A DNA stretch of 64,000 nt from Basidiobolus meristosporus CBS 931.73 (taxonomy: Eukaryota > Fungi > Basidiobolomycota): contig MCFE01000226.1 in assembly GCA_002104905.1 (NCBI GenBank), forward strand, positions 1 through 64,000, written 5' to 3'. The notes under the pieces are model-generated. The model saw nothing but the letters and a program-made list of their open reading frames with translations. It did not search any database and had not been told where the DNA came from. Below are positions 19,280 through 56,269 of the stretch, one piece after another (the first letter of the stretch is position 1; each line of letters opens with the position of its first letter). A program made the translations under genes and the position numbers.

Positions 19280-19948
19280 ATGCAACTTCGCTTGACTGCC
19301 CTAGCTGTTTGGACCGTGCTTGCTGCTTCTGCCTTAGCTAAGCCTACCGGGATCACTCTTGACCTCACGGGGAAGATTCCTGCGCTTACTTCCACACCGA
19401 TTGAGCAAGAGTACCCTGTTGATGCTCCTTGTAACAACTCCGATGAGGCGCAGAATCTATATGGAGGCTTTCCTGTTTGCAACCCTGCATGGTTCTCCGG
19501 GGTGGTGGCATCAGAGCTGGATGCAAGGTTTTTGATCTGGAGTAGCCCCGCCAACCAAGCAGCCATTGAGGACAACGATGTCAACGAAACTGTTGCCGCA
19601 ACTGCGACAATTTCTTTAGCCAGTGATGCCAGCGGCGTGGATGGCTTCCCCATCACGTATCCTGAGTTTAGGCAGTGCGCAAACATTGACCCCGTTGAGA
19701 ATAACGGAGGATTTGTCCTTTACTGGCCTACCGAAGCCATCTATTGCTTTTATAGCGAACCCAACTGTGTCGGAGAACGTGTTTGTATGATCCCACATGG
19801 TCCTGGATCTCAGTATAACACAATCATCCCTGCCACCGAAAATATGATCAAGAATGGACTTCGCAGTAGTGTGGTGTTACCCATGATGCCAAAAAATGGC
19901 TACAAAGCTCCGTTTACCATGAATCCTTTCGAGAATTATGACTATTAG
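19280..19948 (+). CDS. Secreted Cys-containing protein of unknown function, 222 aa (copy 4)
   Basis: ATG 19280, TATATAA at 19225-19231; translation identical to copy 3. Confidence 0.8.
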   Translation: MQLRLTALAVWTVLAASALAKPTGITLDLTGKIPALTSTPIEQEYPVDAPCNNSDEAQNLYGGFPVCNPAWFSGVVASELDARFLIWSSPANQAAIEDNDVNETVAATATISLASDASGVDGFPITYPEFRQCANIDPVENNGGFVLYWPTEAIYCFYSEPNCVGERVCMIPHGPGSQYNTIIPATENMIKNGLRSSVVLPMMPKNGYKAPFTMNPFENYDY

Positions 19949-34314: not shown

Positions 34315-35304
34315 ATGTTAGCGGTTGGAAACTTATCTGAATCATACGGACATAGAGGATTCTATCCGACACCGGGAAACCCCCCAACGACGTTTCACGC
34401 GTGGATGTTCTATGGTGCGCCTGCTCAAAACGCGGCACAAACGTACAAGAGATATACAATTGACGTGTTACGGACTCAATATTTCAACCTACTGGACGAT
34501 GGCAACTTACAGTTGGTGTACGAAGACTCAAGCGACCTGTACAATACGCAGAATGCCTACTCCGAAAGAAATATTGCTGAATTGAAGAGATTCTCAAAGG
34601 AGCAGCTTGTTACCATCTCTGGGCATATTTCCGGAATGCGACAGGCATTTTCGAAGCTATCAACCAACTCCACCCACATTATCCAAACCCTGGTGGATTT
34701 TGTTAACGATCACCGGCTAACCGGCATTGATATTGACTTCGAGAACTACAACCAATGGACGAGCAAAGATTACAGCGATTACAAAAGCTTCGTTACGTCT
34801 CTTGGTAAGAGGTTGCACGAGTCCAACAAGAAACTGGCCATTTGTGGCCCAATGTGGACATCAGAGGAGCCACCGTTCCAGTGGAAGTATGAAGATTTCG
34901 TGAACCTTCCCATCGACTATGTCACTCCAATGATCTACGATTATCAGTGGGATTACGGAGGCGGTGCGCCGATATGCCCTCTCGAATGGCTGAGAAAGTG
35001 GACGCTCAAGATGAAGAGGATATTCCATAGCGATCAGTTGGTAATTGGGCTACCCTCTTACGGGTACACCGCGAAACGAGGTAAATACAACATCAGAAAC
35101 CTAACTCTGCAGCAAATCAAAAGACTGGATGGATATCACGGCGGACGACGCGATAATTCTTCGGCAGAGGTCTTCAAATTCGTGGGAGATACAGTGTATG
35201 TTAGCATAGACCGGAAAGCGATCAACGCAAAACGGAGGGTAGTGGAGAGTTTAGGCGTACGACAAATCTCTGTTTGGCATTTGGGCGGAAATGATTGGTT
35301 CTGA
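34315..35304 (+). CDS. Glycoside hydrolase family 18 (chitinase-like TIM barrel), single domain
   Basis: Catalytic LTGIDIDFE (DxDxE), plus PMIYDY, VIGLPSYGY and terminal SVWHLGG motifs. Start uncertain: in-frame stop at 34273 and no obvious signal peptide. Confidence 0.85.
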   Translation: MLAVGNLSESYGHRGFYPTPGNPPTTFHAWMFYGAPAQNAAQTYKRYTIDVLRTQYFNLLDDGNLQLVYEDSSDLYNTQNAYSERNIAELKRFSKEQLVTISGHISGMRQAFSKLSTNSTHIIQTLVDFVNDHRLTGIDIDFENYNQWTSKDYSDYKSFVTSLGKRLHESNKKLAICGPMWTSEEPPFQWKYEDFVNLPIDYVTPMIYDYQWDYGGGAPICPLEWLRKWTLKMKRIFHSDQLVIGLPSYGYTAKRGKYNIRNLTLQQIKRLDGYHGGRRDNSSAEVFKFVGDTVYVSIDRKAINAKRRVVESLGVRQISVWHLGGNDWF

Positions 35305-35535: not shown

Positions 35536-37017
35536 CTACTCGAATTCACCAGAGATTTCTTCCAAGGACTTTCCTTTGGTTTCTGGCACCCAGAACGTGG
35601 AGAGGAATCCAAGGAACATGATAGCAGAGAAAATTCCAAGAGTTTGAGGAAGGAAGGCGTGGTCGCCATCCTTACCTCCGATTTCCACCAGCTGATTGAA
35701 TCCAAAGGTGGCGATGATGGCACCAAGCTTGCCCGAAGCAGCGGAAATCCCGTGGGCGGTGGAGCGGAACCTGGTGGGGAATACTTCGGATGGAAGCACA
35801 AAGGTAGTGGCATTAGGGCCAAAGTTAAAGAAGAATTGGGCCAGGGTGAACAGAGCAATAAACAGCGCCACTGCGGTATCCCGGATCTTGTAGAAGCCTG
35901 CGGACAGCACAATGAAGATGACGGTGAGGAAAGCGAAGCCCATCAACTGAATCTTGATTCTGCCCATGCGCTCAATGAGAAAAACGGTAAACCAGTATCC
36001 TGGGACGGTGCCCATCAGAGAGATGATCAGGTTACCAACGGCCTCAGTCCACATGGCGTCGTAGGGTGACAGTCCCTTGGATGAGTAGCCGATTGCTTGC
36101 AAAATGTAGGACTGGTTAAGAGAAAGCCCATAGAAGGCAATATCGAGGAAGAACCAGGAAAGGGATGTGCCAAGCAAAACCTTTAGATTTTTCCATTGGC
36201 CAAAATGCTCGGTGAATGTGGTGGTTGGTCTATTAAGTTTGCCAACGTTATGTTGAGCCTCCAGACGCTCCTTCTCTTCCTGGCCCAAGATGCCCTTCAT
36301 ATCCTCAGCTGCCTTCTCCGCATCGCCGTTGACCTCCAAAGTATATCTGGGGGACTCGGGCATAGTCAATCGGAAGTAAACGGTGAAGATTGCTGGGACG
36401 CATCCAAACGCAAGCATCAACCTCCATACATAGTCAAAGTTATTCTGATCAGCCCGGATAGCTCCTTGGAAGATAGCGAGCATTATCACAGTGAACAAAG
36501 CTCCCACCAGGATACCGGTACCCTGGGAGGCGAACACCGCAGCAATCATCATACCACGTCGGCTAGTGGAGGCAAACTCTGAAGTGATTACTGCAGAGAC
36601 CGGGTAGTCCCCACCAATTCCTACTCCAAGGATGAAGCGCCAGAACCCAAGGATAGCCACCACATTCAAGCCTTTAGTCCAAGATCCAGCCAGAGCACAA
36701 CAGATGGTAGCAAAAATGATGATCACAAGTTCCGAGCCGTACATCTTCTTTCTGCCAAGACGATCACCCAGGTAGCCAAAGAGCAACTGACCAATAAGTG
36801 TTCCAAAGGCGGTGGCGCCCTTGAGAGGGCCTTCGTACTGCTTCGGGATTTTGTTGTTGTTATCGTGGTAGTAGACATAGCCCATCATAGGGACCGCCAA
36901 GTTGATGATGAAGATATCATATGCGTCAGTAAAGAACCCGATACCGGCGATGATGATGGCACGCAAATGCCAGCCTGTAAGCTTTGGCTCGCTGAGGGAG
37001 GGAAGTTGGTTAGACAT
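35536..37017 (-). CDS. PHO84: MFS inorganic phosphate:H+ symporter (PHO84-like), 493 aa
   Basis: AGIGFFTDAYDIF, LGDRLGRKKMYG, GIGGDYPVSAVITSEF, FFNFGPNATTF, EVFPTRFRSTAHGISAASGK; multiple hydrophobic segments. Confidence 0.92.
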   Translation of the reverse strand: MSNQLPSLSEPKLTGWHLRAIIIAGIGFFTDAYDIFIINLAVPMMGYVYYHDNNNKIPKQYEGPLKGATAFGTLIGQLLFGYLGDRLGRKKMYGSELVIIIFATICCALAGSWTKGLNVVAILGFWRFILGVGIGGDYPVSAVITSEFASTSRRGMMIAAVFASQGTGILVGALFTVIMLAIFQGAIRADQNNFDYVWRLMLAFGCVPAIFTVYFRLTMPESPRYTLEVNGDAEKAAEDMKGILGQEEKERLEAQHNVGKLNRPTTTFTEHFGQWKNLKVLLGTSLSWFFLDIAFYGLSLNQSYILQAIGYSSKGLSPYDAMWTEAVGNLIISLMGTVPGYWFTVFLIERMGRIKIQLMGFAFLTVIFIVLSAGFYKIRDTAVALFIALFTLAQFFFNFGPNATTFVLPSEVFPTRFRSTAHGISAASGKLGAIIATFGFNQLVEIGGKDGDHAFLPQTLGIFSAIMFLGFLSTFWVPETKGKSLEEISGEFE

Positions 37018-38128: not shown

Positions 38129-38659
38129 ATGGTCAAGATTACCTCAATTCTATCCTGTGCTATCTTCGGAGCCGTCTCTTTTATTTCAACATCGGAAGCC
38201 CTTCCAGCACCGGCTAGCGAGGCTGTCCAAGAAGTTCACCTCTCCCAGCTAAGTGATGTGAAGAGTAAATTGGAAGGAATCACCAATTTGGCTTCATGCT
38301 CACTAGATCATCGTTACAAAAATGGTGAATGCACCGATTGGGCAGATGCCCGCTACTATCAACTCACCTGCAAACATACCACTTGGATGAGCGATGCTAG
38401 CTCCTGGACCAGCAATGCTCGTAGTACCGGTAGCTGGACAGTGTCTAGTCAGCCACGAGTTCCCTCCATCATTGTAATCCAACCCGGACATCAAGGTTGT
38501 GGAGCCGCTGGACACGTAGGTATTGTTGAGCGAATCAACAGTGATGGAAGTGTGTACACAAGCAACTGGAACTTCGAGTTTGATGGTAAAGGTGGCCTCT
38601 ACACCATGTCATATGGCAATTTCAATACTGGCAACGGAGTGACATTCCTCTGGCATTAA
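38129..38659 (+). CDS. Secreted CHAP-domain protein 1 (intact, type A)
   Basis: Signal peptide; GECTDW (catalytic Cys), GHVGIVERINSDG (catalytic His), YTSNWN match the CHAP layout. Confidence 0.88.
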   Translation: MVKITSILSCAIFGAVSFISTSEALPAPASEAVQEVHLSQLSDVKSKLEGITNLASCSLDHRYKNGECTDWADARYYQLTCKHTTWMSDASSWTSNARSTGSWTVSSQPRVPSIIVIQPGHQGCGAAGHVGIVERINSDGSVYTSNWNFEFDGKGGLYTMSYGNFNTGNGVTFLWH

Positions 38660-39140
38660 TCGGCTCTTAATCATCATATTGACTGTACCATAAGATTCAG
38701 GAAATCAGCTAACCATATTCACCACATATCATTGCAAGATTAACATACAATAATAAGCCACTGATTATTTGAGGAAACTGATTTATTTGCATTCCAAAAG
38801 ACCGAATCTTCCTAATAGGATGAAATATAAAAAGTAAGAAGAGAACCCTACGATGTCAGATTAGGAAATATTGTGATTGACATCGTGGTGAATGTAGTAT
38901 TGAGCCAGCAAATGAGGGATTAGACTGGATTGTTATCGGAGCAGTGCGATTGGATTCAAGTTCAATATTAATTGACACCTGTACCCGTTCAATCAAGACG
39001 CAGTGATGTCTTGGCTACTTGTGCACTAGATTATCATAGAATGATGAATACACCCACCGGTTTGTATGTTCCTAGCTGAGCCATACTTAATTGCCGCGTA
39101 ATACTCATATATCTAACCCTCTATAATTAGATTTCTTAAT

Positions 39141-39295
39141 GGATTGTGGGGCAATTAGGTATGTTGGGGTGATCAGGCGAATTAACAACGATGGTAGTGT
39201 TTACGTTAGCAACTGATATTGTAAGCTTAGTGGAGGAGAGCTGTTCCCTACATCCTATGGAAACTTCAATCGGAGTGGAGTATCACAAGTCTGAT
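39141..39295 (+). pseudogene. Relic CHAP C-terminal fragment
   Basis: GGATTGTGGGGC...GCGAATTAACAACGATGGTAGTGTTTAC...TCCTATGGAAACTTCAAT aligns to the 3' half of the CHAP genes, with stops. Confidence 0.7.
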
Positions 39296-39695
39296 CTATC
39301 TGTTTAACTAAGAAACTAATATGAAACAACTCGTCATAAGCAAAAACTTAATGTAGATTTAACAATAACCTAAAAATGCTAAGCAGTCATATGTTCTGAT
39401 GGAATATGATATCTAATGTCAAGGTCTGGTCTAGAGCTAGCCCAAAAATCCCTATTTTCCAACGGAATAGCAGAAGACATAGAATTCCCATAGAGCGTTG
39501 CCAACAACGAATGAATTTCACGATGATTCCCAATCAAATGCTCTGGCCACGTTTTAAGATCAGGGGGATCCGATTGAGCCAATCTCAATGTTGACTGGAT
39601 TGAATTTAATTCCTGATTTGTATATAATGCAGGCGAAATAATTCAAATACTACACCAGCGAAGTTGACTATCACAGCAAGCAATTCAACACAGAC

Positions 39696-40218
39696 ATGGT
39701 TCGGATTTCAGAGCTAGTTCGTGTACTTGTATGCACCACCAGTATTGCCGTAGCTCTCCCAGCACCAGTCATGAATACCCCATCACAAGTATCCAGCCAA
39801 CAGAACACCACGGAAGTTAGAAGTAAGCTTGACAGCATCACCAACCTTGCCTCGTGCTCACTGGATCACCGCTACAACAATGGTGAATGCACCGACTGAG
39901 TCCGATGCTCGCTACTACCAACTCACCTGCCAACACACTACCTGGATGGGGGATGCTCGGACCTGGCCCAGCAGTGCTCGTAGTGCTGGTGGCTGGACAG
40001 TGTCCAGTCAGCCACGAGTCCCCTCCATCATTGTGATACAGCCCGGGTATCAAGGCTGCGGGGCCACCGGACATGTAGCTGTTGTTGAGCGGATCAACGG
40101 TGATGGTAGTGTGTACACAAGCAACTGGAACTACGAGTTCAATGGCGAAGGCGGACTATACACCACGTCTTACGGAAACTTCAATACCGGAAACGGTGTA
40201 TCCTTCATCTGGCATTAG
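39696..40218 (+). pseudogene. CHAP gene 2, disrupted (chimeric A/B)
   Basis: GACTGAGTCCGAT versus GACTGGGCCGAT in paralogues gives TGA at 39897 plus a +1 shift; the rest aligns to CHAP3-6. A sequencing error cannot be excluded. Confidence 0.8.
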
Positions 40219-40790
40219 TAAAGAATTTACAAACATATAGGCATACAGATATCATCTTTGGATTTTGGAGCTCAATTGATAGACCACATAATCTGATATT
40301 ACCAATCTTAACCTAACACATACCTTATAATGTAAATAAAAATAGAGCAAGCCAAACTCACATCACCTCTACCTTATTTTAGCAGCTTGAATATTAGAAC
40401 TATTCATTGCTAAAATTTGGACAAAAATTAGCTAGTGAGCAGGCTTAATTCGGTGATATATTATCGGAAAATTTATGGACCATGTTCACCTATTCAAAGT
40501 TCAGATTGGATTTATGGTATGGAGCTTTCGGTGAACTAAGCTTGATCGGTATCAATGGAGTTTGTGTAGAATCAAATTGTCAACCTAAAATTATATCAAC
40601 AGCTGAACCAAGTAATGGTACACAGCCCAACAGATTCGATTCGGTTCCATTCATATATTTTCCTGATGGCAGCTCCTGAAATATTGGATTATGTCCCATT
40701 TCCAAATTGGATTTACTACGTATCCGTAGAGTTCGGGGCAGCGGGGAGATTACCAAATAGCGTAACACGATAAATGATTCCAATCCAGCG

Positions 40791-40942
40791 TGGAATCCAC
40801 CCAAGCTGCCACAAAAAGAAATCCATAAAAATCGTAAAATACACGCTATCAGATTGGTTGGATTCAGTTGAACCTTCGTATGCTTCGGTGGGAGGTGATT
40901 GGATCCGGAATCTAGCTAAGAACGTGCCCAATTGTATATAAA
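40791..40942 (+). promoter_or_regulatory. Conserved CHAP upstream block with TATA box
   Basis: TGGAATCCAC-x-C-x-A-x-CTGCCA-(A)n at 40791, 42997, 45425, 47280 (degenerate at 52892). TATATAA at 40935, 43134, 45562, 47417, 53025, about 40-47 nt before each ATG. Confidence 0.6.
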
Positions 40943-40981
40943 TCGGTAGCGACAGATGTGTAAAGCTCATCCAATACAGAA

Positions 40982-41515
40982 ATGGTCAGAATCACAGCGT
41001 TGTCTTTTGCTCTTCTCGGTGCCGTCAGCCTAACCGAGTTCACCGCACTGGCTCTACCAGCTCCAGTTGCCAATGCCCCGTCGAACCTGTCCACTCAGCA
41101 GAACACCACCGAAGTCAGGAGCAAACTCGACAGCATCACCAACCTTGCCTCGTGCTCACTGGATCACCGCTACAACAATGGTGAATGCACCGACTGGGCC
41201 GATGCTCGCTACTACCAGCTCACCTGCCAACACACTACCTGGATGGGGGATGCTCGGACCTGGCCCAACAGTGCTCGTAGTGCCGGTGGCTGGACAGTGT
41301 CCAGTCAGCCACGAGTCCCCTCCATCATTGTGATCCAGCCCGGGTATCAAGGCTGTGGGGCCACCGGACATGTAGCTGTTGTTGAGAGGATCAACGGCGA
41401 TGGCAGTGTGTACACTAGCAACTGGAACTACGAGTTCAATGGCAAAGGCGGACTGTACACCACATCCTACGGCAATTTTAATACAGGAAGCGGGGTGTCT
41501 TTCATCTGGAATTAG
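40982..41515 (+). CDS. Secreted CHAP-domain protein 3 (intact, type B)
   Basis: 177 aa; signal peptide; GECTDW and GHVAVVERINGDG motifs; TATA at 40935. Confidence 0.9.
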   Translation: MVRITALSFALLGAVSLTEFTALALPAPVANAPSNLSTQQNTTEVRSKLDSITNLASCSLDHRYNNGECTDWADARYYQLTCQHTTWMGDARTWPNSARSAGGWTVSSQPRVPSIIVIQPGYQGCGATGHVAVVERINGDGSVYTSNWNYEFNGKGGLYTTSYGNFNTGSGVSFIWN

Positions 41516-43180
41516 TAGAAAACTAATGAATATAACGACTCATGAATGAGACCTTATGATTCAGGAAATCAAGCAGCAGGTCATGAATATACCAACTGAT
41601 GTAACACCATACCATTTATCTTTAACACCTCCATACCTCGTGATAGGAACAAAATAAAACCTTTCAAACTATATCCCTGTATCGTATTTACCTTTCAATT
41701 CTCCGTGTAATAATGAGGGGGTTTCTATATCAACATAATGAGTAAAGAGCAGAGTGGATCGAAGTCATTCGATAACGAGAGGTAATAGTGCGGAAAAGCA
41801 AAAACTCATCCCAAAATTTCTAGTGGGGATTATGATGGATTCTGGATCGATCTAGCTAATCAGAGATTAGCGGCGAACATTATCGGATTTCGTTGATTGG
41901 ATCGATATTCAATCCAGGATTCAAATGTTGGGAATAATTATGGGTGACTGCGGTCTCCAGTAGTAACTCCGGACTGGGTGGTTCAATCACTGAAATTTGC
42001 TATCTACTACTCATGAACATTTGTTCAGAGAATCGAGTATGGGGTGGCTTTATTTGATGGGGAATTGAGCGGAGGAAGAAATGTACACACAAGCATATCG
42101 TACTTCATACTTCGTTAAGAGGGGTTCTGCATCACACGATATCGCAACTTCAGTGAGGATAAAGTGGTACAAATCTGATGGAAAAATCGACAGCATACTC
42201 TTTTGAACACATAATATTTGTCGTTAGAGGCTAATGATTACCAAATCCAGGTATGAACTTGTGGACAAGATATTCCATTTCACAGAAATAGTTTCTAAGC
42301 GAGCACCATGCCCATCATAAGCCATTCGCCACAATCAAACCTGATGTGAGTAGCTGAGACAAGGTAGAAAAATCTAAAGACGATGAGGGCCTGAATCAAC
42401 CAAGAATATATACCGCTGTAGAAAGAAATCCGAGAAAACACGTCTAGGCCTGGAGATCGTTGGTATGAAATTTGAGAACGGCTCGCCACTAATTCCATAA
42501 AGATTGTCAAAGGGCAAATGATACCAAGGAAGAAATTCACCAGCTTTGGCGAATAGATTCCATGAAGCTTTCAACTCAAAAGCCATGACCACGCTTTAGG
42601 ATCAGGTGGATCCAGCTGGACCAATCACAAGGTCGATTGGATCGGGCCAAATGCTATTTATCACCAATAAATGTGAAGTGTTTGTAGTGCTAATGGCTGA
42701 ACGTACCCATTATATTGATCCAACCCGGATGCTACGGCGGCGGTGGCCAAGGAAATATTAGTGCTGTTAATGGAAATAAACAGTATTCACATAAGTGAAG
42801 CGTGTAGTTCAATGGATAAGGAGCATAGTGATGTATAGTCCAATTACCGTGATTCATTTACATACCATTCGTTCTTTTATGGACAGGTCTTCAGATGAAG
42901 AATTAAGATCCATTTCCAGAATGAATCCGTAGAGCCCAATGGGGGCAGGGTCATTTCCAAAAAAACGAAGTGGAAATCAATGATTTCAATCCAACATGGA
43001 ATCCACGCGAACTGCCAAAAAAAGCAGTCCTTGAAATTCATACCAAACACATCTAATTTATGGAATTCAGATGAGGTTGGGTGAACGCGGGAGGTGATTG
43101 GAGGAAGAGTAAATTTAGAGACATGCTCGCTTATATATAAATCAGTAGCTTCAGAGGTGGAAAGCTCATCCAATACAGAA

Positions 43181-43714
43181 ATGGTCAGAATCACAGCGTT
43201 GTCTTTTGCTCTTCTCGGTGCCGTCAGCCTAATCGAGTTCACCGCATTGGCTCTACCAGCTCCAGTTGCCAATGCTCCGTCGAACCTGTCCACTCAGCAG
43301 AACACCACAGAAGTCAGGAGCAAACTCGACAGCATCACCAACCTTGCCTCGTGCTCACTGGATCACCGCTACAACAATGGTGAATGCACCGACTGGGCCG
43401 ATGCTCGCTACTACCAGCTCACCTGCCAACACACTACCTGGATGGGGGATGCTCGGACCTGGCCCAGCAGTGCTCGTAGTGCTGGTGGCTGGACAGTGTC
43501 CAGTCAGCCACGAGTCCCCTCCATCATTGTGATCCAGCCCGGATATCAAGGCTGTGGGGCCACCGGACATGTAGCTGTTGTTGAGCGGATCAACAGTGAT
43601 GGCAGTGTGTACACAAGCAACTGGAACTACGAGTTTAATGGAAAGGGCGGCCTATACACCACATCCTACGGCAACTTCAATACCGGAAGTGGAGTATCTT
43701 TCATCTGGAAATAG
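43181..43714 (+). CDS. Secreted CHAP-domain protein 4 (intact, type B)
   Basis: ATG 43181 chosen by homology; 177 aa; four aa differences from CHAP3. Confidence 0.9.
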   Translation: MVRITALSFALLGAVSLIEFTALALPAPVANAPSNLSTQQNTTEVRSKLDSITNLASCSLDHRYNNGECTDWADARYYQLTCQHTTWMGDARTWPSSARSAGGWTVSSQPRVPSIIVIQPGYQGCGATGHVAVVERINSDGSVYTSNWNYEFNGKGGLYTTSYGNFNTGSGVSFIWK

Positions 43715-44290
43715 AAGAAAAATAATGAACATATAGACATATAGATGATACCTCACGATTCAGGAAATCAATCCATTGCCCCAAGAATCCACCATCTACA
43801 ACATCATTGATTGATAGCTATGAGAGTACCGAATAAACTACAGTGTTCAGTTACAGCCAGCGCTATATTTGCTTTGTAGTATTTCAACTCCTCGCTGGGC
43901 CGAATATCAGACTCGATTGGAAAAATGGGAAAATCTTTTCTCAATGTTTTGTTGAGGCGATGAATTCAGTATTGGCTATTCGAAATCGAGTTGGATAAGT
44001 ACCGTCCTAGGTTGACTGGATTTCAAATGATCTGGCGATTCATCAGCGATTACAGAATACGGTGGAAGCTACACACAGAATCAAGTCGAAACATAAATAG
44101 GCAACATTATTAAAACTAAACATTAATCTTGCTCAGTATACCTCTCCTATTCGTTGAGCACTCGGGGATATTGCTAGCATTGCTCGTTACTTATTGGATC
44201 ATAAAATGGTGGGCAATGCACTGATGATTCATCTTATGTGGATTAATTTATCATTAATTGTGCAATGTTGAAATGGATAGCTTCTCCCCC

Positions 44291-44370
44291 CATCATGGTT
44301 GTGTAAGTACTGAATGTGTTGGGGTCGAGGAGCGAATCAACAATGCTAGTGATGTATACACCCGCAAATG
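44291..44370 (+). pseudogene. Relic CHAP fragment
   Basis: CATCATGGTTGT...GAGCGAATCAACAATGCTAGTGATGTATACAC matches the QGC...ERIN...VYT region. Confidence 0.55.
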
Positions 44371-45608
44371 ATGTCCAGTGTCTGACCCCTTTGACGGCAA
44401 TAGAGTGCTACAAGTGTTCCCTCAACAACAAATGCATCCAATCTCGCATCAACCTACTCTAATTATTTACCGCGACCTCATTTCCACTTGAAGTGGTTAT
44501 ACCATTTACGGATAGTCGTATCTTGCATATCGTTGCTACCCACCCTTGCGTGAAATCTTGGTTACATACACGATGTAAATAGCCGTAGTTCAAACGAAGA
44601 AAGTGGCCAGTAAAATGAGAGGATGCCTGGGCCTAGAGTCAGCACCAGTAAATCACTGAATATCAAATTCGAGAATGCCTCCTTGCTATTATATAATATG
44701 AAGTCCAGGATAAAGGCCAGCAGCAGAAACAGTGCTTAAGGTTAGTTGAGAAATGATGAATCCTTGAGCAAAACAATTTCCACGATATTTAGTAGAGAAT
44801 TGGATGAATTCATTATTTGTCTACCAGCAAATATTATCGGGCCTAGGTGAAAGGATGTATGCCCAATTCTGGGTTCAAACGATTGATAATGTTAATAATG
44901 GACTACGAAATATAGCTGTGGTTCTGGCCAGGGATATTACAGTGATGGAACTTTTAACCTACGAATCATTTGTTCAAAAATACATGTTTATGAAGATACT
45001 TGATATGCATGGGGTTGCGCAATATATCAGTGGAAGAAGTGTATGCTCTAGTAACTAGCACCTCATGGTCAGTTGAAGGGGATTAAATAACACATCTAAT
45101 GGCAACATGAACGAGAACAGAGTATTACAACTGTAATAAATATAACGATAGCATACACTTTTGAGTGCACATCTATTGTTTTTCATACGTATTGATGCCA
45201 CCAAATCCAGATAGTATTTTAGATGAAGTTTTGCTTTTTGCGGACATCATCTCACTGAGAAAAAATAAAATAATCAATAATAAAGAGTAGCTTGATTGAG
45301 CTGCTCCCCCATATAGAACTCAGATTCATATACAGAATGAATCCGTAAAGAGCCCAATGGGCGGATGGTGGTGGCGGGACTATTTCCAAAAAGCGGAATT
45401 GAATTCAATGATTTCAATCCAACATGGAATCCACGCGAACTGCCAAAAAAAGCAGTCCTCGAAATTCACCCCAAGCACATCTAATTAATCGAATCTAGGT
45501 GAGCTTGGGTGGAAGTTGGAGGTGATTGGAGGAGGAGTAAATTTAGAGACATGCTCGCTTGTATATAAGTCAATAGCATCCGACCTGTACAGCCCATCCA
45601 ACATAGAA

Positions 45609-46143
45609 ATGGTCAGAATCGCAGTGTTGTCTTTTGCTCTTCTCGGTGCCATCTGTCTCACCGATTTCACTACTATGGCTCTACCGGCGTCGGTTGCCAA
45701 AGCTCCGTCGGACCTGCCCACTCAGCAGAACACCACAGAGGTCAGGAGCAAACTCGACAGCATCACCAACCTTGCCTCATGCTCACTGGATCACCGCTAC
45801 AACAATGGTGAATGCACCGACTGGGCCGATGCTCGCTACTACCAGACTCACCTGCCAACACACTACCTGGATGGGGGATGCTCGGACCTGGCCCAGCAGT
45901 GCTCGTAGTGCCGGTGGCTGGACAGTGTCCAGTCAGCCACGAGTCCCCTCTATCATTGTGATCCAGCCCGGATATCAAGGCTGTGGGGCCACCGGACATG
46001 TAGCTGTTGTTGAGCGGATCAACGGTGATGGCAGTGTGTACACAAGCAACTGGAACTACGAGTTTAATGGAAAGGGCGGACTATACACCACATCCTACGG
46101 CAACTTCAATACCGGAAGTGGGGTGTCTTTCATCTGGAAATAG
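45609..46143 (+). pseudogene. CHAP gene 5 with a single +1 frameshift (type B)
   Basis: TACCAGACTCACC versus TACCAGCTCACC: extra A at ~45846, giving 535 nt. Otherwise intact, so a sequencing error is possible. Confidence 0.7.
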
Positions 46144-46669
46144 AAGAAAACTAGTGAACATATAGACATATAGATGATACCTTGTGATTCAGGAAATCAA
46201 GTAACAGGCCACGAATTTGCCAACTAATGTAATCCCATACCACGTATCCTTAACACCCCCTTACCTCGTGATAAAAGCAAAATAAACCCTTTCCAACTGT
46301 ATACACAATACCTCGCGATTCAGGAAACCAGCATATTGTATTCATTACCTCTGGAGCCCACAACCCATACCATCATTGAATGAGCACCTTAACAAAACAC
46401 AATAGATCACTATATTCAGTTATAGTAAAGGCTTTGCTTGCATATCAACGTATCAAATATTTCTTGAATTTTGATATGGATTTTCAAATGGAGTCTTTGC
46501 TCATATATGCCAATCTTTCCGATCTCTTTATTATGACGGATACTTCGATATCGATCAAGCCAATCAGAAATTTGGCTAGATAGTTACCCTTCCGAGTTGA
46601 TTGGGTCAAGTGCAACGCTAAATTCAAACCAATTAATCAGTGGTTTCGGCCCTGACCCAACAGTGGCCG

Positions 46670-46820
46670 TAACAAAACCGGGGATCAAGGTTGTGGGGCG
46701 ATTGGAAAAGTTGGTATTGTTGAGCGAATCAACAGTAATAGAAGTAATTGTACAAGTAACTGTGATTACGATTCCAATGGTTAAGAGGAGCTTTTGACCA
46801 CATCACTTAGAGACTTTGTT
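46670..46820 (+). pseudogene. Relic CHAP C-terminal fragment
   Basis: GATCAAGGTTGTGGGGCG...GGTATTGTTGAGCGAATCAACAGT aligns to the CHAP 3' half. Confidence 0.7.
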
Positions 46821-47463
46821 CATTTGGCGACTTCGATATGATTATCTATCCTTCACTTGGCTGCCGGTTCAAAAGCAATGAATTAAAATAGGCACAAATA
46901 CAGTTGGGCTTTGCTGTCTGATTCGTGAATGCATAATTCGCAAGTTAAATGGTGTTATAGCACACCGGTCTAAATCTAGTTCTAATAGATATATTTCGAG
47001 AAACCACTGGAAACCAAGTTCAATTCAGATCAATAGAGTCGATAGAGATTCGAACTGCCTACGTACCATTATCATCTCAGCATCATAGCCAATCAGTGGT
47101 ACATTGTCTGACTAAAGGGATTCAATACTATTCCATTCGCTTCGTTGCGGACATGTCTTCAGGGAAAGAATTCAGATCCATTTACAGATTGAATCCGTAA
47201 AGAGCCCAATGGGCGGGTGATGGTGGTGGCGGGGTCATTTCCAAAAAGCGATACGGAAATCAACGATTTCAATCCAACATGGAATCCACGCGAACTGCCA
47301 AAAAAAGCAGTCCTCGAAATTCACCCCAAGCACATCTAATTAATCGAATCTAGGTAAGCTTGGGTGGAAGTTGGAGGTGATTGGAGGAGGAGTAAATCTA
47401 GAAACATGCTCGCTTGTATATAAGTCAATAGCATCTGACCTGTACAGCCCATCCAACATAGAA

Positions 47464-47997
47464 ATGGTCAGAATCGCAGTGTTGTCTTTTGCTCTTCTCG
47501 GTGCCATCTGTCTCACCGATTTCACTACTATGGCTCTACCAGCACCGGTTGCCAAAGCTTCGTCGAACCTGCCCACTCAGCAGAACACCACAGAAGTTAG
47601 GAGCAAACTCGACAGCATCACCAACCTTGCCTCGTGCTCACTGGATCACCGCTACAACAATGGTGAATGCACCGACTGGGCCGATGCTCGCTACTACCAG
47701 CTCACCTGCCAACACACTACCTGGATGGGGGATGCTCGGACCTGGCCCAGCAGTGCTCGTAGTGCCGGTGGCTGGACAGTGTCCAGTCAGCCACGAGTCC
47801 CCTCCATCATTGTGATCCAGCCCGGATATCAAGGCTGTGGGGCCACCGGACATGTAGCTGTTGTTGAGAGGATCAACGGCGATGGCAGTGTGTACACAAG
47901 CAACTGGAACTACGAGTTCAACGGCAAAGGTGGACTGTACACCACGTCCTACGGCAATTTCAATACTGGCAGTGGAGTATCATTCATCTGGCATTAG
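47464..47997 (+). CDS. Secreted CHAP-domain protein 6 (intact, type B)
   Basis: ATG 47464 by homology; 177 aa; catalytic Cys and His motifs intact. Confidence 0.9.
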   Translation: MVRIAVLSFALLGAICLTDFTTMALPAPVAKASSNLPTQQNTTEVRSKLDSITNLASCSLDHRYNNGECTDWADARYYQLTCQHTTWMGDARTWPSSARSAGGWTVSSQPRVPSIIVIQPGYQGCGATGHVAVVERINGDGSVYTSNWNYEFNGKGGLYTTSYGNFNTGSGVSFIWH

Positions 47998-49009
47998 TAG
48001 AGAACTTATGATCACATAGACTTATAGATGATACTCTGTGATTCAGGAAATCAAGTAACAGGCCATGAATTTGCCAACTAATGTAATACCACACCGCTTA
48101 TCCTCAACACCCCCCTACCTCGTTATAGAAGTAAAATAAACCCTTTCCAACTGTATGCATAATACCTCACTATTCAGGAAACCAACATATTGTATTCATT
48201 ACCTCTAGAGTCCACAGCTTACGCTATCCTTGAATGGTAACCTTACCGACGCACAATAAGTCACTATTCTTGGTAATAGCCAATTCTTTGTTTGCTTTTC
48301 AGTATATCAAATCTTTGCTTCAAACGTGGCATGGATTTTCAATCCAATGGACCTCGCCGGAGCAAACACCATTATTTGTGATATTTTGGTTAATTTGATT
48401 TCGATCAAGCCAATCAGAGGTATCATTCCGAGTTGATTGGGTCCAAAGGCAAAGCTGAATTCAAAATAATTGATCATGCACTTCAGTACAGTATGGAACG
48501 CCTTACAGAAACAATACGGATTAGAAGCAGTTCAAATGTGTCACCCTTTAGGCATCAAATCAAACGTCAATCTTGCTCAGAGTAATGCACCCATTCATTG
48601 AATACACGGAAATATTGCTAATATTGCCTGTTGCTTGTTGGATTGCCAAATGATGGGCAATGCACTGATGATCCATCATGGTTGTTAAAGTACTGAATGT
48701 GTCAGGGCCAATAATAATAGTGATGGTTTAGGGTTAGGTGAAAGAAAACCTAGGCCTATAACAGGCACCACTTGAGTATGAATATCAAATTCGAGATAGC
48801 TTCCTTGCTATTTTCAGAAGAAATCACCGATAGCCAATACCACTACTTTCAAATCATTGATCACGACCACGTTTTATGATCAAGAGGATCCGACTGAATC
48901 AATCCTGAACTCAGGCGATTGAATTAAGGTTAGTGCCGATTTGTATATGAGTGGAAGACGCAGATGCTTTAGTAGTGCATCATTGTAGGATACCACAGCA
49001 AGTAATTCA

Positions 49010-49150
49010 ATATTGATTGTCGAACGGAACAACAGTGATGGCAGTGCGTACACAAGCAACTGAAACTTCGAATTCAGTGGGAAAGGTGGCTTTATACTAT
49101 ATCTTATGGAAATTTCGACACTGGCGGTGGTGTAGCGTTCATCTAGCACT
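49010..49150 (+). pseudogene. Relic CHAP C-terminal fragment (type A)
   Basis: AACAGTGATGGCAGTGCGTACACAAGCAACTGAAACTTCGAATTCAGTGGGAAAGG; W codon mutated to TGA; frameshifts. Confidence 0.8.
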
Positions 49151-49756
49151 AACCACAAACCAATCATACTTTTGATGTAAAAGGCATCATTTTGTGCTTG
49201 ATTCTGGGAATTAAATGACATTAGACTGCTCCCCTCTAATACTAGAATCAGGCACCTAATTGCCTACTATAGGACCCGTACCTTATAAGACTCATAAAAC
49301 TTTAATAGCCTAGATTTATGAATCATCCCTTGTTGCCTTTTCCACAACCTCTTACGTATCAATGGCGTGCGAGAATATACCAAGTGGGGATGATTCAATA
49401 TGTGCACATTGTTGGTATGAACTGGGGGACCCAGCTAGGAAGAAAAGGAATGTAACGCCAAGTTACATCAACGTCATTGTTATTTTGGAAAGTGTCGCTA
49501 ATATAACTACAAACAACTTGGTTCGTAATGAGGATGAGTAAAATAGGTTTCTGGAAGCTGCGGGCACTTCTAATTTAATGAATGACAGGCTAGCTTCGAT
49601 CACTTTTTTTGGAATTTTCATCTATGTCAACGAATCTAATGTTGAAGGTTCTTTGGTTCAGGAATCTTTAGTCTGGAACTTGTACAATGTATCAACTTTC
49701 GGATGTTATCCAATCAGCATCAAGACTCCTTCATGGTTGCCACCCGACTAGAAAAC

Positions 49757-49825
49757 AAAGTTGTGGGGCAACCGGAAACGTAGCCATACTATGATGGAGG
49801 ACATTCTAGCAGCTGGAACTTTCAT
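49757..49825 (+). pseudogene. Highly decayed CHAP fragment
   Basis: AAGTTGTGGGGCAACCGGAAACGTAGC...GCAGCTGGAACTT resembles GCGATGHVA...SNWNF with an internal deletion. Confidence 0.45.
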
Positions 49826-50205
49826 AGCCATACAAAAGCAAGATTCACCAACTACTTTTGTAGTGATATTTACCGCAAAGTCGTGGTCCCATCATTATGA
49901 CTGCTCACTGAATGTCGATTAGGCCTTAGTTGAATCTATACTATTATCGACAGTTTCTCCCACTCGATCCAGATCCAGATTGGAGCAGGTCCCATGAAAT
50001 TTGCGGGACCTCAGTTACCAAACCTAGTCAGTAAATAGCTCAAATATTCCAATCCATCGAACGGGTACAATGCCTACGGCTGATCTGATCTTCAATGGAT
50101 CCTAATGGGCATCTGTTGGTGATTAGACACAAATTCGATCCGTAAGCCCTAAAATTGATATAAAATCCAGCCTCCTCAATATCATCAAATTAAATCAACA
50201 TAACA

Positions 50206-50739
50206 ATGGTCAAAGTCGCAGCATTGTCTTGTGCTCTTCTGAGCACCATCAGTCTAACAGAGTTCAGCGCGTCAGCTCTACCCGCACCATCAGTGGACAT
50301 TCCGTCTCAAGAATCAAACCAAAAGAACACCACAGAAGTTAGAACTAAGCCAGAAGGACTTATCAACCTCGCATCGTGCTCACTGGACCATCGTTACAAC
50401 AACGGTAAATGCACCGATTGGGCGGATGCCCGTTACTATCAACTCACCTGCCAGCAAACTACTTGGATGAGTGATGCCAGCTCCTGGACCAGCAATGCTC
50501 GTAGTGCTGGTGGTTGGACAGTTTCCAGTCAGCCACGAGTTCCCTCCATTATTGTGATCCAGCCCGGGTATCAGGGTTGTGGGGCCACTGGGCATGTTGG
50601 TGTTGTGGAGAGAATCAACAGTGATGGCAGTGTGTACACAAGCAACTGGAACTTCGAATTCAGTGGGAAAGGCGGGTTGTACACTACATCCTATGGCAAC
50701 TTCGACACCGGCAGTGGTGTATCATTTATCTGGCATTAA
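50206..50739 (+). CDS. Secreted CHAP-domain protein 7 (intact, type A)
   Basis: 177 aa; signal peptide; GKCTDW and GHVGVVERINSDG. Confidence 0.88.
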   Translation: MVKVAALSCALLSTISLTEFSASALPAPSVDIPSQESNQKNTTEVRTKPEGLINLASCSLDHRYNNGKCTDWADARYYQLTCQQTTWMSDASSWTSNARSAGGWTVSSQPRVPSIIVIQPGYQGCGATGHVGVVERINSDGSVYTSNWNFEFSGKGGLYTTSYGNFDTGSGVSFIWH

Positions 50740-51801
50740 TATATATCAGATGCTTGCATGACCAAGATTCAAAGATTCTGGAAATCAACCAATAGATCAG
50801 ACTAGACCGTTCCATATTGGAAATACCTCTTAACCTTAATAAATCATAAATGCGTATTGGCATATTAACTGGATTATTCTGACTCTCGGAAATGTATTTT
50901 GTCAAGTTTCGAACGGACTGACGTCGAAGACCAGATAGGCTTGCGAAAAATCTACCAATAAGCCCTGCAATACTGGTGTAAGAATTGTCTACTTCTTTAT
51001 ATCTCAACAGCTCAGGTCATTGGGAATCATTACGGTGTAAGTACCAGTAGAAATCTTTCATTCCAATCCGGATTTGCTAGTCTAAAGCGCTAGTGCGAGA
51101 AATATGGGTTCATTTGTTAATAATAAGCATGCCTCGGCCGTGGTTGGTGTGAACTCCCATAACTGTAAAATAGAGGATCAATAGGGGTTGGCAAGCCGGG
51201 AAATTTCTATAAATGATATGTAGAATGGTTAGACAAGTCACAACAGGCGTATATATTGTTCAAATGCTTATCGATATTCATCGCTACGTGGTATATTTGT
51301 TGAGTCAAACATTAATAAAAGTTATTATTGCCCGGGAAACACCACGGTGCAAACGGAATGCTTGGAAAAATGAAATACAAATATTCCTTATCCCCCCCCT
51401 CCGCCTGATTATCCCAAGGCCGTGCAGCTGACTGATATGTATTGCCAAGTTAGTCGATTGAAGTCCCCTTAACCATCCCCAATTTTTGAGTTAAACGGCG
51501 AATACAACGAACAGTGAGAAGCTGAGTCACTTTGAAAATATTTGGCAAGCACCAGGGTTGCACTCTGACAAGCCATATTCATGATAGCCCAGACGCTGAT
51601 GTTTGTCCCTAGCTTTTGATTGATAATGGCCAATGAGCCTTTTGGTATAATTTGGCTAGAACCAACTTTGTAGCCCAGGTGGTATTGCTCAAGTTGATTG
51701 GGTTGAGGTATATTCGAGGAATCAGTGGAGCAGGATATGAATTGTAGCATGCATAACCAAGCTACGTAAACCAAAGATCCCGAATCTTCTTCGACACAGA
51801 A

Positions 51802-52319
51802 ATGTTCAAAATCTCCGCGTTTTCTTTGGCTGTACTCGGTGTCATCGGTCTTACCGAGTTCACCACCATGGCTCTACCAGCACCAGTCGTCAATACTCCG
51901 TCACAAGTATCCAACCAGTAGAACACTACAGAAGTTAGAAGCAAGCTCTATAGAACTACTATCCTCGCCTCATGCTCATTGGTCCATCGTTATAATAACG
52001 GTGAATGCACCGATACTATCAACTCACCTGCCGGCACACTACTTGGGTGAGTGATGCCAGCTCCTGTACCAGTAATGCTCGTAGTGCTGGTGGCTCGACA
52101 GTGTCCAGTCAGCCACGAGTTCCCTCCATTATTGTGATCCAGCCCGAGTATCAGGGTTGTGGGGCCACTGGGCAGGTTGGTGTTGTGGAGAGAATCAACA
52201 GTGATGGCAGTGTGTACACAAGCAACTGGAACTTCGAATTCAGTGGAAAAGGCGGGTTGTACACTGAATCCTATGGTAACTTCGACACCAGCAGTGGTGT
52301 ATCATTCATTTGGCATTAG
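51802..52319 (+). pseudogene. CHAP gene 8 pseudogene (type A)
   Basis: In-frame TAG at 51919-51921; 16-bp deletion at ~52014 removing WADAR; catalytic His changed to Gln (GQVGVVE). Confidence 0.88.
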
Positions 52320-53063
52320 GAAATGCTAGATAGAGCCATAAATAACATCAGGCGATTCTGGAAATTGGATGAGACATGAGATGATATTCGTAAATTTCAT
52401 TTCCTGGTATGTTGTATGACAATAAACTGCACCTTGTCACATTAATGAGCACTGGTTAGTAGCTTTGACCGAGAGGCCCTCATCTTGAGAGTAATATAAA
52501 CATCCAATTGGTTACAATCCGTATTTTGATGAGCAGTTTTGAGATCAGGGTCAAAATATGTATTCCACGTCCTTGTATTACTTTATCAGTGGCACATAGT
52601 TCATCGGAAATTGGTACGCATTCAAATGATTTTGGCGGTCCAAAGCTTTACTTGACCTATCAGGTATAGAATCTAATCGAAGGATTCGACAAAGTAAAGT
52701 TATGCTATCCTTGAATTCCGGTCCGCACTGAGTAGGGCAACTAGAGGACTTCAACACGATTCGTTCATGTGTGAGCGATTCACGCATGGAGTAGCGATGA
52801 TGTTTTGAAAACCTGGATGGTGTCAATATGAATTGAGGTGATGGGATTATCTCCACAATGGGACACAAAACTATGAAATTTCAATCCATCTTGGATTCTA
52901 TGCCAACTACCAAAAAAGCGGTGGATGAAATTGGCGAAGAGCACGCTATCGGATCAGTTGGATCTAGCTGAGCCTTGAAATAAGTGGATTGGATTGGAAT
53001 GATGCTGATGATCTTGGGAATTCGTATATAAGCCGGTATCAACAGGATCTTGGAGCACAATCA

Positions 53064-53589
53064 ATGATCAAAATCGCAGTATTATCCTGTGCTCTTCTTG
53101 GTACTATCAGCATAACTGGGTCCACCGTCGTAGCTTTACCTGCACCAGTCGCGAATGCTCCGTCCCACGAATCGAGTCAACAGAACACCATGGAAGTTAA
53201 CCTGATGGCATTGCCAGACTCACATCGTGCTCACTGGACCATCGTTACAACAACGGTAAATGCACCGATTGGGCGGATGCCCGCTACTATCAACTCACCT
53301 GCCAGTACACTACTTGGGTGAGTGATGCCAGCTCCTGTACCAGCAATGCTCGTAGTGCTGGTGGCTGGACAAAGTCCAGTCAGCCACGAGTTCCCTCCAT
53401 TATTGTGATCCAGCCCGGGTATCAGGGTTGTGGGGCCACTGGGCATGTTGGTGTTGTGGAGAGAATCAACAGTGATGGCACTGTGCAACAAGCAACTGGA
53501 ACTTCGAATTCAACTGCAAAGGTGGGCTTTATAATACAATTTACGGAAACTTCGACACCGCCAGTAGTGTATCATTTATCTGGCATTGA
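53064..53589 (+). pseudogene. CHAP gene 9 pseudogene (type A)
   Basis: Signal peptide intact from ATG 53064; frameshifting indels near 53200 and 53490; 526 nt versus 534. Confidence 0.85.
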
Positions 53590-54496: not shown

Positions 54497-56269
54497 TCAC
54501 TTGAGAATTATCCCTGGCGTGTACTCTTTGAGCCAAAAGATGTCTTCTGAAATATCGGAGCCAACTTCGCACTCCTTCGTGCTTATCCTCACCCCCAGTA
54601 CTGGATGTAAAGGGAAATCTATCTTGACCGGGAACCCAGCTGGGGTCTCTCCATCTTTATGTGCGATGTTACATAATCTGACAAATCCTGACCAATCCAA
54701 GATCCCGCCACCAAGTAGCTGCTCCAGTACTGGGGAGATCTGGCTCAGAGAGATGGGGAACCCGTCGGATTTGTCGAGGCCGCGAGGCTGGGCCCAGCAT
54801 ACTTTGATCGATTGCTTGCACTCGAATTTGAACAGCTGCGTGCTGACCTTCGCCTTGGAAAAGGTGATGGCCCCGGTGTTATTCTCGTTGAAGTAATGGT
54901 CGAGGTCCTCCGCCACCACCACGGGAATGGCATCCTGCTCACTGCGATACACGTTCCCAAACTGCTCTATGCTCACTTCGTCCCACGCTAAGGACTGTCG
55001 CTTGCTTGCAGTATCCGATCTATCCTGACGTTTCAAAAACTTGGGCCCGGTCCCCGAGGATTTCCCATTCGAGTCCAGGTCGTCCTCCGAGTCCGAATCA
55101 ACCTCTGAGTCCGAGTCCATGGATCCTTGCGTCCCATTTTTGGGCCCATCAGCAACATCGGTTTTTTCTTGGGAGAGCAAGGTGTCCAACCCGTTGAATC
55201 CCAGTGAGCGAAGCTTATTGATCAGCACACTTGAGGAAACACTAACGGTACGGCCGTTGGGACTGGTCCACATGTTATCGACCAACTCGCGGGCTAGAAT
55301 GGAGATGGAGACGTTCTTGATCTTGTATATCTTATGACCGGTCTTCTTTTTCAGCAGCGAAAGCTTCTTCCTGGGCTCACAAGGCTTGATGGTGACGTTT
55401 TGTAAGGGCAACCACCATTTCACCATCGGCGAACGCATCGTATTGCCGACAAAGTTATCGATCAATGGGCCGGTTAGAGAGGGGTAAACCTCTTGGGTGA
55501 GCTCGCGCTCATGATCCACTATGATGACGGTGGGGGGTAGAGGGAATGCCTGCGCGCTATTCGGATCGTCGGCTCGAACAATCAAACTGAACCGACTCTG
55601 GTTGGATTTCTTCAACGCTTGTCTACGCTTCTGAATGACGTCGGCCGCTGTTTGGTCTGGCGATTGGACTCTTCCGCCCAGGAGCAATGTGGGCTCCCCG
55701 AAATCCACCCTGAAGTAGCAGCCTTTTTTCCGGACTCTTATCGCATCTCTGGGTAACGTATGTCTCGCCAACAGGTTCGATAGCCGACTGGTGAACTTCC
55801 AATGCAACGTGATGTCCAGCGTCTCCCCCAACCTTTGATTCAATTTCGCCAGTGGCCCTCCCTCAGGAGGGGAGTTCGTGCTCACTGGATTCTCATTGGC
55901 CGAGGGCTGATGGGCTTTCGCTGTGAGTAGACTGATGGGTGATGCACACCAATCTCGAGCCTGCTGTTCCACCGATTTGAGCAGGATCTTTCGGATCAGG
56001 TCCCGGTTCTGGAGTGCGGTGGCATCCTCGAGAGGGCTCCACGTAGGGACTCCATTGTGGTCCCTCTTACGGCCTATACAGTCTGCTCCACGGTCAAGCA
56101 ACAGATGGGCAACCTCAAGATGCTCCAGCAAAAGGGATAGTTGGAGCGGGGTGTTCCCATGATGGTCTCTCTCATTGATTTGGTTGTACAAAGAGCCGCC
56201 CAAGGCGGTTTCCAGCCCGGCGAAGTCGTTTTGAAAAACAAGTCGATGTAGAGGGTAGTTCAAGTGCAT
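54497..56269 (-). CDS. Ankyrin-repeat protein, ANKRD13/GPCR-chaperone-like, 590 aa
   Basis: N-terminal ankyrin repeats (YPLHRLV, GNTPLQLS, WSPLEDA), LHWKFTS...RDAIRVRKKG..FRVD and C-terminal GFPVKIDFPL match the ANKRD13 layout; acidic low-complexity insert. Confidence 0.8.
   Translation of the reverse strand: MHLNYPLHRLVFQNDFAGLETALGGSLYNQINERDHHGNTPLQLSLLLEHLEVAHLLLDRGADCIGRKRDHNGVPTWSPLEDATALQNRDLIRKILLKSVEQQARDWCASPISLLTAKAHQPSANENPVSTNSPPEGGPLAKLNQRLGETLDITLHWKFTSRLSNLLARHTLPRDAIRVRKKGCYFRVDFGEPTLLLGGRVQSPDQTAADVIQKRRQALKKSNQSRFSLIVRADDPNSAQAFPLPPTVIIVDHERELTQEVYPSLTGPLIDNFVGNTMRSPMVKWWLPLQNVTIKPCEPRKKLSLLKKKTGHKIYKIKNVSISILARELVDNMWTSPNGRTVSVSSSVLINKLRSLGFNGLDTLLSQEKTDVADGPKNGTQGSMDSDSEVDSDSEDDLDSNGKSSGTGPKFLKRQDRSDTASKRQSLAWDEVSIEQFGNVYRSEQDAIPVVVAEDLDHYFNENNTGAITFSKAKVSTQLFKFECKQSIKVCWAQPRGLDKSDGFPISLSQISPVLEQLLGGGILDWSGFVRLCNIAHKDGETPAGFPVKIDFPLHPVLGVRISTKECEVGSDISEDIFWLKEYTPGIILK

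Follow-up and report, generated by a model that had tools for sequence, protein, structure and literature searches.

Here we describe a tandem array of genes for small, putatively secreted CHAP domain proteins (PF05257) in the fungus Basidiobolus meristosporus CBS 931.73. We analysed the first 64,000 nucleotides of contig MCFE01000226.1 (assembly GCA_002104905.1), hereafter the window, and found that positions 38129-53589 hold nine near full-length CHAP copies, all intronless and on the plus strand, as judged by tblastn with copy 3 as query and by the list of open reading frames (ORFs). By the same tblastn search, no other near full-length copies occur in the 64,000-nt window. With E-values between 1e-65 and 1e-120, the nine copies cannot be chance matches. 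Five copies are intact (176-177 aa), and in the other four alignment locates small indels and stops that disrupt the gene. An earlier note on this DNA, made from the letters alone, had read the locus as nine co-oriented copies, five intact and four disrupted, plus at least five fragments. The copies were confirmed by tblastn, by the ORF list and by alignment of the lesions, and the fragments had been slightly undercounted, since a DNA profile of the nine copies gives eight extra relics between them, all on the plus strand and each derived from the gene's 3' half. In total, the 15.5 kb array contains 17 CHAP-derived segments (Table 1).

Table 1. CHAP-derived segments of the array in order of position, followed by the two flanking genes.
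Feature	Position	Strand	Remarks
CHAP copy 1	38129..38659	+	intact, 176 aa; most divergent, 71% amino acid identity to copy 3
CHAP 3'-half relic	39142..39292	+	tblastn and DNA profile, E 2e-16
CHAP copy 2, pseudogene	39696..40218	+	12-nt deletion in signal peptide; 1-nt insertion near 39901; stop
CHAP copy 3	40982..41515	+	intact, 177 aa; query for model and searches
CHAP 3'-half relic, weak	42078..42152	+	DNA profile, E 1e-3, marginal
CHAP 3'-half relic	42677..42822	+	DNA profile, E 6e-6
CHAP copy 4	43181..43714	+	intact, 177 aa
CHAP 3'-half relic	44291..44370	+	tblastn and DNA profile, E 1e-6
CHAP 3'-half relic, weak	45027..45111	+	DNA profile, E 6.5e-4, marginal
CHAP copy 5, pseudogene	45609..46143	+	1-nt insertion near 45846
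CHAP 3'-half relic	46676..46860	+	tblastn and DNA profile, E 1e-21
CHAP copy 6	47464..47997	+	intact, 177 aa
CHAP 3'-half relic	49017..49151	+	tblastn and DNA profile, E 8e-34
CHAP 3'-half relic	49706..49821	+	DNA profile, E 8.5e-7
CHAP copy 7	50206..50739	+	intact, 177 aa
CHAP copy 8, pseudogene	51802..52319	+	stop at codon 40; 5- and 11-nt deletions near 52013; catalytic His replaced by Gln
CHAP copy 9, pseudogene	53064..53589	+	7-nt deletion near 53198; 1-nt deletion near 53487
MFS sugar/other transporter gene	35536..37017	-	left flank, outside the CHAP family; Pfam
Ankyrin / ANKRD13_C-type gene	54497..56269	-	right flank, outside the CHAP family; Pfam

Three intact copies match the Pfam CHAP profile (MEROPS C51) with 55-58 bits against a cut-off of 26 (E 1e-15), which gives the profile confirmation that the earlier note had called for. 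PDB sequence searches matched the intact copies to the CHAP enzymes 2k3a and 5t1q, and a search of AlphaFold DB clusters returned CHAP clusters. In the AlphaFold model of copy 3, built on a 22-row alignment, the catalytic core is predicted with a local confidence (pLDDT) above 90, and the signal peptide and the linker are disordered. When this model was compared with the PDB by Foldseek, the top 20 fold matches were all CHAP or CHAP-like wall hydrolases (probability 1.0); weaker fold matches include glutathionylspermidine (Gsp) amidase, trypanothione synthetase-amidase and Tae3, the last of them at E 0.04. The Cys (G.CTDW) and His (GHV.VVE) motifs, already pointed out before, are present, with Gln at the His position in the copy 8 pseudogene. 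All intact copies have Cys69 and His130, and these two residues, like Glu135, Asn147 (or Asp) and Asn149, are retained by almost every relative, fungal or bacterial. In the alignment with 2k3a, its Glu and Asn stand opposite Asn147 and Asn149, and we take these 2k3a residues to belong to the published Cys-His-Glu-Asn relay. Also, 20 alignment columns are invariant between the fungal enzymes and those of Ktedonobacteria. By profile, motifs and predicted fold, which is of the papain-like alpha+beta type, the array genes encode CHAP domain proteins.

The proteins consist of a signal-peptide-like N-terminus, a linker of about 30 residues and a catalytic domain of 120 residues. All nine N-termini have a single positively charged residue ahead of a hydrophobic core of 12 residues (mean Kyte-Doolittle 2.1-2.6), and they share a conserved A-L-P-A-P stretch; the array proteins are probably secreted. 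An N-x-T sequon for N-glycosylation lies in the linker of four of the five intact copies and of related short-form paralogues. A TATAWA motif was found 39-75 bp 5' of the ATG in 7 of the 9 copies, in agreement with the TATA box that had been ascribed to most of them. This layout is not restricted to the array, as all fungal members start in a signal-peptide-like manner and continue with either a short linker or a long, low-complexity one. The bacterial relatives, of 250-350 aa, have instead a long N-terminal region with a hydrophobic membrane segment before the CHAP domain. The isoelectric point (pI) of the catalytic domain ranges from 4.3 to 9.7 among paralogues of the genus, and one may speculate that this spread mirrors different targets.

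Three additional cysteines (Cys58, Cys82 and Cys125) co-occur in 18 of 18 short-form Basidiobolus sequences examined and are absent from long-form paralogues, Entomophthorales and bacteria, with the exception of Cys125 in one long-form paralogue. From this distribution, they appear as a derived signature of one Basidiobolus subfamily, and the all-or-none pattern suggests a structural link between them, but their number is odd. The earlier suggestion of secretion-adapted disulfides did not hold as a general adaptation to secretion, because other putatively secreted fungal members do without them.

The closest named proteins in a word-indexed search belong to Basidiobolus ranarum (up to 84% identity) and B. 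meristosporus CBS 931.73, and all matches better than 1e-30 are from Basidiobolus. These are followed by Thermogemmatispora, Dictyobacter and Tengunoibacter, with 53-57% identity over the domain; overall, the closest named non-fungal relatives are all Ktedonobacteria (Chloroflexota), with 50-58% identity. An exhaustive search of representative sequences agreed with this, as the top 12 of 1123 matches were all Basidiobolus, with Dictyobacter and Ktedonobacteraceae next. With a single peptide pattern, 185,579 prokaryotic species were scanned (one genome each), and all 41 loci obtained lie in Ktedonobacteria or Chloroflexota. When a Conidiobolus protein was used as query, it matched only itself and two metagenomic near-copies.

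In a maximum-likelihood tree of 130 rows and 118 columns, the fungal sequences form one clade (45 rows, support 100/98). Within it there is a Basidiobolus group of 37 rows (97/74) and a second group (100/98) whose named members, Conidiobolus coronatus, Entomophthora muscae and Massospora cicadina, belong to the Entomophthorales. The fungi are united at 100/100 with inner Ktedonobacteria sequences in a clade that is otherwise all Ktedonobacteria, and the outgroups to this clade are Chloroflexota CHAP proteins. The single sequences nearest to the fungal clade are a protein from a Ktedonobacteraceae metagenome-assembled genome (MAG) and a metagenomic one, both with weak support. The comparison with bacterial CHAP proteins that had been proposed earlier thus gave one fungal clade in surroundings that are exclusively Chloroflexota. 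The tree indicates that the CHAP family is bacterial in ancestry and that the fungal clade falls within the Chloroflexota radiation. The simplest reading would be a single transfer from a Ktedonobacteria-like donor to the ancestor of Basidiobolus and Entomophthorales, followed by vertical descent. In this sense, the horizontal acquisition advanced in the earlier note stands as to bacterial origin; the event would be neither recent nor private to this array, being shared by B. meristosporus, B. ranarum and Entomophthorales. Broad vertical inheritance across fungi had been named as an outcome that would speak against acquisition; the vertical descent found here is confined to a single subphylum, which makes the transfer an old one and leaves horizontal origin unrefuted.

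Regarding the history of the array, the catalytic domain shows ratios of nonsynonymous to synonymous substitution (dN/dS) of 0.04-0.12 between intact copies, with synonymous divergence (dS) from 0.17 among copies 3, 4 and 6 to about 1 between copies 1 and 7 and the rest. These values mean strong purifying selection on the catalytic domain; the signal peptide and linker evolve faster. Such low ratios at a dS of up to about 1 imply that the copies are old and have been kept by selection. In addition, a B. ranarum protein nests among the copies of the window in the tree, and part of the array is therefore older than that species split. We accordingly rejected a recent burst of duplication, given both the dS values and the position of the B. 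ranarum protein. The expansion by birth-and-death evolution proposed earlier was borne out by intact genes under purifying selection next to four pseudogenes and eight relics. Copies 3-6 share 93-96% coding identity, with 78-93% in the 300 bp upstream and 160 bp downstream, and their mid-spacers are 61-76% identical or unalignable. Gene conversion across the genes, or codon and promoter constraint, could explain why the genes are more alike than the spacers. For the stretch between copies 3 and 7 (41516-50205), the contrast hints at conversion confined to the genes; in its spacers, relics follow copies 3 and 4 at similar distances.

Arrays are also found outside this locus. B. meristosporus has a five-gene CHAP array of the same layout on MCFE01000126.1, E. 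muscae has a contig on which three CHAP genes bear consecutive locus tags, and at least 17-19 CHAP sequence clusters per Basidiobolus species were recovered by the word-indexed search. On MCFE01000126.1, a gene for a 510-aa Thiol_cytolysin protein (locus 6251-8283) lies 1.7 kb upstream of the five-gene array. Thiol_cytolysin is the family of cholesterol-dependent cytolysins, typical of bacteria, and this may be another transferred gene beside the hydrolases.

The array is flanked on both sides by genes outside the CHAP family (Table 1), the right one of the ANKRD13_C type, which is presumably eukaryotic. The intron-bearing fungal surroundings described earlier were recovered in a zinc alcohol dehydrogenase (ADH) gene of the window, whose first exon ends near 31603 and whose next exon starts near 31396. 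Apart from this gene and the two flanking ones, the other window genes are also of fungal type, namely two DUF3472-CBM18 genes and one GH18 gene. GC content at third codon positions (GC3) is 0.46-0.64 in the CHAP genes and 0.61-0.64 in the flanking ones. The spacers, of 0.5-2.2 kb, are unique sequence filled with relics. With eukaryotic flanks, an intron-bearing neighbour and the family present in several fungal assemblies, the array is stably integrated in the fungal genome. Several side observations concern the rest of the window. The GH18 chitinase-type gene lies at 34315-35304 (+), near the array, and the DUF3472 genes, fused to a chitin-binding CBM18, form a near-identical inverted pair (7760-8770 on the minus and 12534-13526 on the plus strand) with 328 identical residues; the region is thus rich in wall-active secreted proteins. 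Also, an ORF of 237 aa occurs in three copies, at 1765-2478 (-), 17029-17742 (+) and 19235-19948 (+), with mutual identities of 91-99.6%. It matches no Pfam family, is hydrophobic at the N-terminus and contains several Cys, and may represent a small secreted protein family.

Taken together, we propose that the array genes code for small, secreted CHAP-family cysteine hydrolases of peptidoglycan, derived from one old transfer from a Ktedonobacteria-like donor, expanded in Basidiobolus and having an antibacterial or feeding role, and we assign to this reading as a whole a probability of about 0.7. The gene would have entered the common ancestor of Basidiobolus and Entomophthorales once. The N-terminal membrane anchor of the bacterial protein would have given way to a eukaryotic signal peptide, a eukaryotic promoter would have been acquired, and inheritance would have been vertical since then. 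In Basidiobolus, tandem duplication would have produced many arrays with a continual birth and loss of copies. The fungus lives in herptile guts and in dung. Released into such bacteria-rich habitats (amphibian or reptile gut, dung, litter), the enzymes may cut in the peptide part of bacterial peptidoglycan, either at the amidase bond or at a peptide bond of the stem or cross-bridge, and the outcome may be the lysis of competitors, feeding on bacterial wall material, or both. To our knowledge, fungi make no peptidoglycan, and we know of no CHAP-type substrate in their own walls. This, together with the intact conserved machinery and the secreted appearance of the proteins, makes bacterial wall hydrolysis outside the hypha, for antagonism, feeding or both, the most likely role; we infer the substrate and an antibacterial or bacteriolytic function from sequence features. 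The presence of Basidiobolus correlates with gut bacterial community structure (PMC10964425). Several points weigh against this proposal. The single-domain array enzymes are near neutral (pI 5.9-7.1) and have no wall-binding module, both of which are atypical of strong exolysins, and the signal peptides were judged by heuristics of charge and hydrophobicity. The affinity to Ktedonobacteria refers to named relatives, most close metagenomic ones carrying no name, and the pattern of the genome scan is biased to this CHAP subfamily. Finally, an approximately unbiased (AU) test did not reject an inner Ktedonobacteria clade that excludes the fungi (p 0.46), and the fungal clade is therefore either nested in this inner group or sister to it.

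Other explanations bear on the function or on the origin of the array. The enzymes may be real and secreted and yet not act as a weapon against peptidoglycan: they could cleave another amide substrate (fungal wall, host or insect peptides, or conjugates like glutathionylspermidine, as other CHAP enzymes do) or trim peptidoglycan fragments to blunt host immune sensing. The CHAP family does include non-wall amidases, and two of these were found among the weaker fold matches. It is also suggestive that members occur in insect-pathogenic Entomophthorales, which are exposed to host immunity, and the neutral pI and missing wall-binding module fit here as well. However, the top relatives by sequence and by fold are all peptidoglycan hydrolases, the 20 invariant columns suggest an unchanged substrate pocket, and a substrate of this type is not known from the walls of the fungi themselves, so we consider a function of this kind unlikely. 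In the opposite direction, Basidiobolus could keep dozens of secreted CHAP lysins as a diversified arsenal with paralogue-specific bacterial targets, which would be a main enzymatic means by which it structures the bacteria of the herptile gut. The existence of several subfamilies, the wide pI range of the catalytic domains, the derived three-Cys signature and the varied linkers would be in line with this; we regard it as possible, although rather doubtful.

As to origin, the direction of transfer could be reversed, from fungus to Ktedonobacteria, or Basidiobolus and Entomophthorales could have gained the gene separately. Under the AU test, a sister position of the fungal clade to the sampled Ktedonobacteria is still allowed, and the branches of Entomophthorales are long, so that their grouping with Basidiobolus could partly be a long-branch effect. 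Nevertheless, both scenarios appear very improbable. The joint clade is in turn surrounded by further Chloroflexota CHAP proteins as successive outgroups, and CHAP is a large family in bacteria and phage, whereas fungal members were found in one subphylum only in these searches. Moreover, fungal monophyly is well supported and mirrors the species split, and all fungal members share the layout of predicted signal peptide plus linker in place of the bacterial membrane anchor. The array could lastly be bacterial DNA misassembled into a fungal contig, or a contamination, an outcome that the earlier note had itself raised. The CHAP genes are indeed intronless and of bacterial type, and the high identity of copies 3-6 could mislead an assembler. 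Against this, there are eukaryotic genes on both sides of the array and an intron nearby, the spacers are unique and filled with relics, the density of pseudogenes is unlike that of bacterial genomes, the predicted signal peptides and TATA boxes take the place of the bacterial anchor, and GC3 agrees with that of the fungal neighbours. In addition, the family and its array layout recur in assemblies of B. meristosporus, B. ranarum and E. muscae, and the best bacterial identity is only about 57%. We therefore rejected contamination and misassembly, to which we give practically no weight.

In a full-text literature search, with most subscription journals outside its coverage, we found no paper linking a CHAP domain with Basidiobolus, Conidiobolus, Entomophthora or Zoopagomycota. 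A previous study reported that 2-5% of Basidiobolus genes are candidates for horizontal transfer from bacteria, and its main text makes no mention of the CHAP family (PMC7466969). Public records of Basidiobolus automatically annotate these genes as hypothetical Peptidase C51 proteins. Given such annotation, and because the domestication of wall hydrolases is an established concept, the "undescribed system" announced earlier was too strong a term. Under our proposal of domesticated secreted hydrolases, the few bacterial wall hydrolases known to have been domesticated by eukaryotes would be joined by a fungal one of CHAP type. It would also be an unusually clear transfer, in which a single donor lineage and a single recipient clade are involved and the membrane anchor is seen to give way to a signal peptide. 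Work on Basidiobolus and bacteria has so far centred on transferred secondary-metabolite genes, and a large secreted lysin family may provide a second mechanism. If the arsenal of paralogue-specific lysins were real, it would be the first of its kind described in a fungus and would derive from a single ancient Ktedonobacteria gene. Furthermore, these enzymes are small, single-domain and apparently suited to eukaryotic secretion, which makes them convenient candidates for lysin discovery.

Among characterized enzymes, the fungal proteins share Pfam family and fold with the staphylococcal CHAP proteins (SSP0609 of S. saprophyticus, 2k3a; SAOUHSC_02979 of S. aureus, 5t1q) and with phage lysins (CHAPK of LysK, the phi812 hub). 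In all of them a helix begins at the Cys, a strand carries the His, and the polar relay follows 17 and 19 residues past the His. However, identity is only about 30%, the third relay residue is Asn (sometimes Asp) in the fungi and Glu in the staphylococcal and phage enzymes, and the fungal ones have a predicted eukaryotic signal peptide and lack a wall-binding or second catalytic domain. The likeness to the CHAP proteins of Ktedonobacteria (Thermogemmatispora, Dictyobacter, Tengunoibacter, Ktedonobacter) is closer, as it extends over the whole catalytic domain and the surroundings of the Cys and His motifs. Like the fungal genes, those of Ktedonobacteria are often tandem paralogues; in Dictyobacter and related MAGs, as many as four CHAP paralogues stand in tandem within a 6 kb locus. 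The two differ at the N-terminus, where the membrane-spanning segment of the bacterial proteins is replaced in the fungal ones by a signal peptide, predicted to be cleavable, and by the short or low-complexity linker.

The dae genes of ticks and others are domesticated bacterial wall hydrolases. Membership of the array in the lineage of dae and of the Tae type VI effectors was considered and rejected, since the best relatives are Ktedonobacteria CHAP proteins and Tae3 is a weak fold match, which makes dae an analogue only. Other cases are the transferred GH25 lysozymes (PMC4241558), the NlpC/P60 enzymes of Trichomonas (PMC6299479, PMC10461829), LytFM of mites (PMC4600878) and the hydrolases of ladybirds (PMC7807722). 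The logic proposed for the array is found in all of them: a horizontally gained hydrolase is combined with eukaryotic expression and secretion signals, duplication and selection. The fungal case differs from all of these in family, which is CHAP and not Tae, NlpC/P60 or GH25, in its putative Ktedonobacteria donor and in its recipient, the Entomophthoromycotina. Its expansion, with the number of clusters per species given above, is far larger than in the other domesticated hydrolases.

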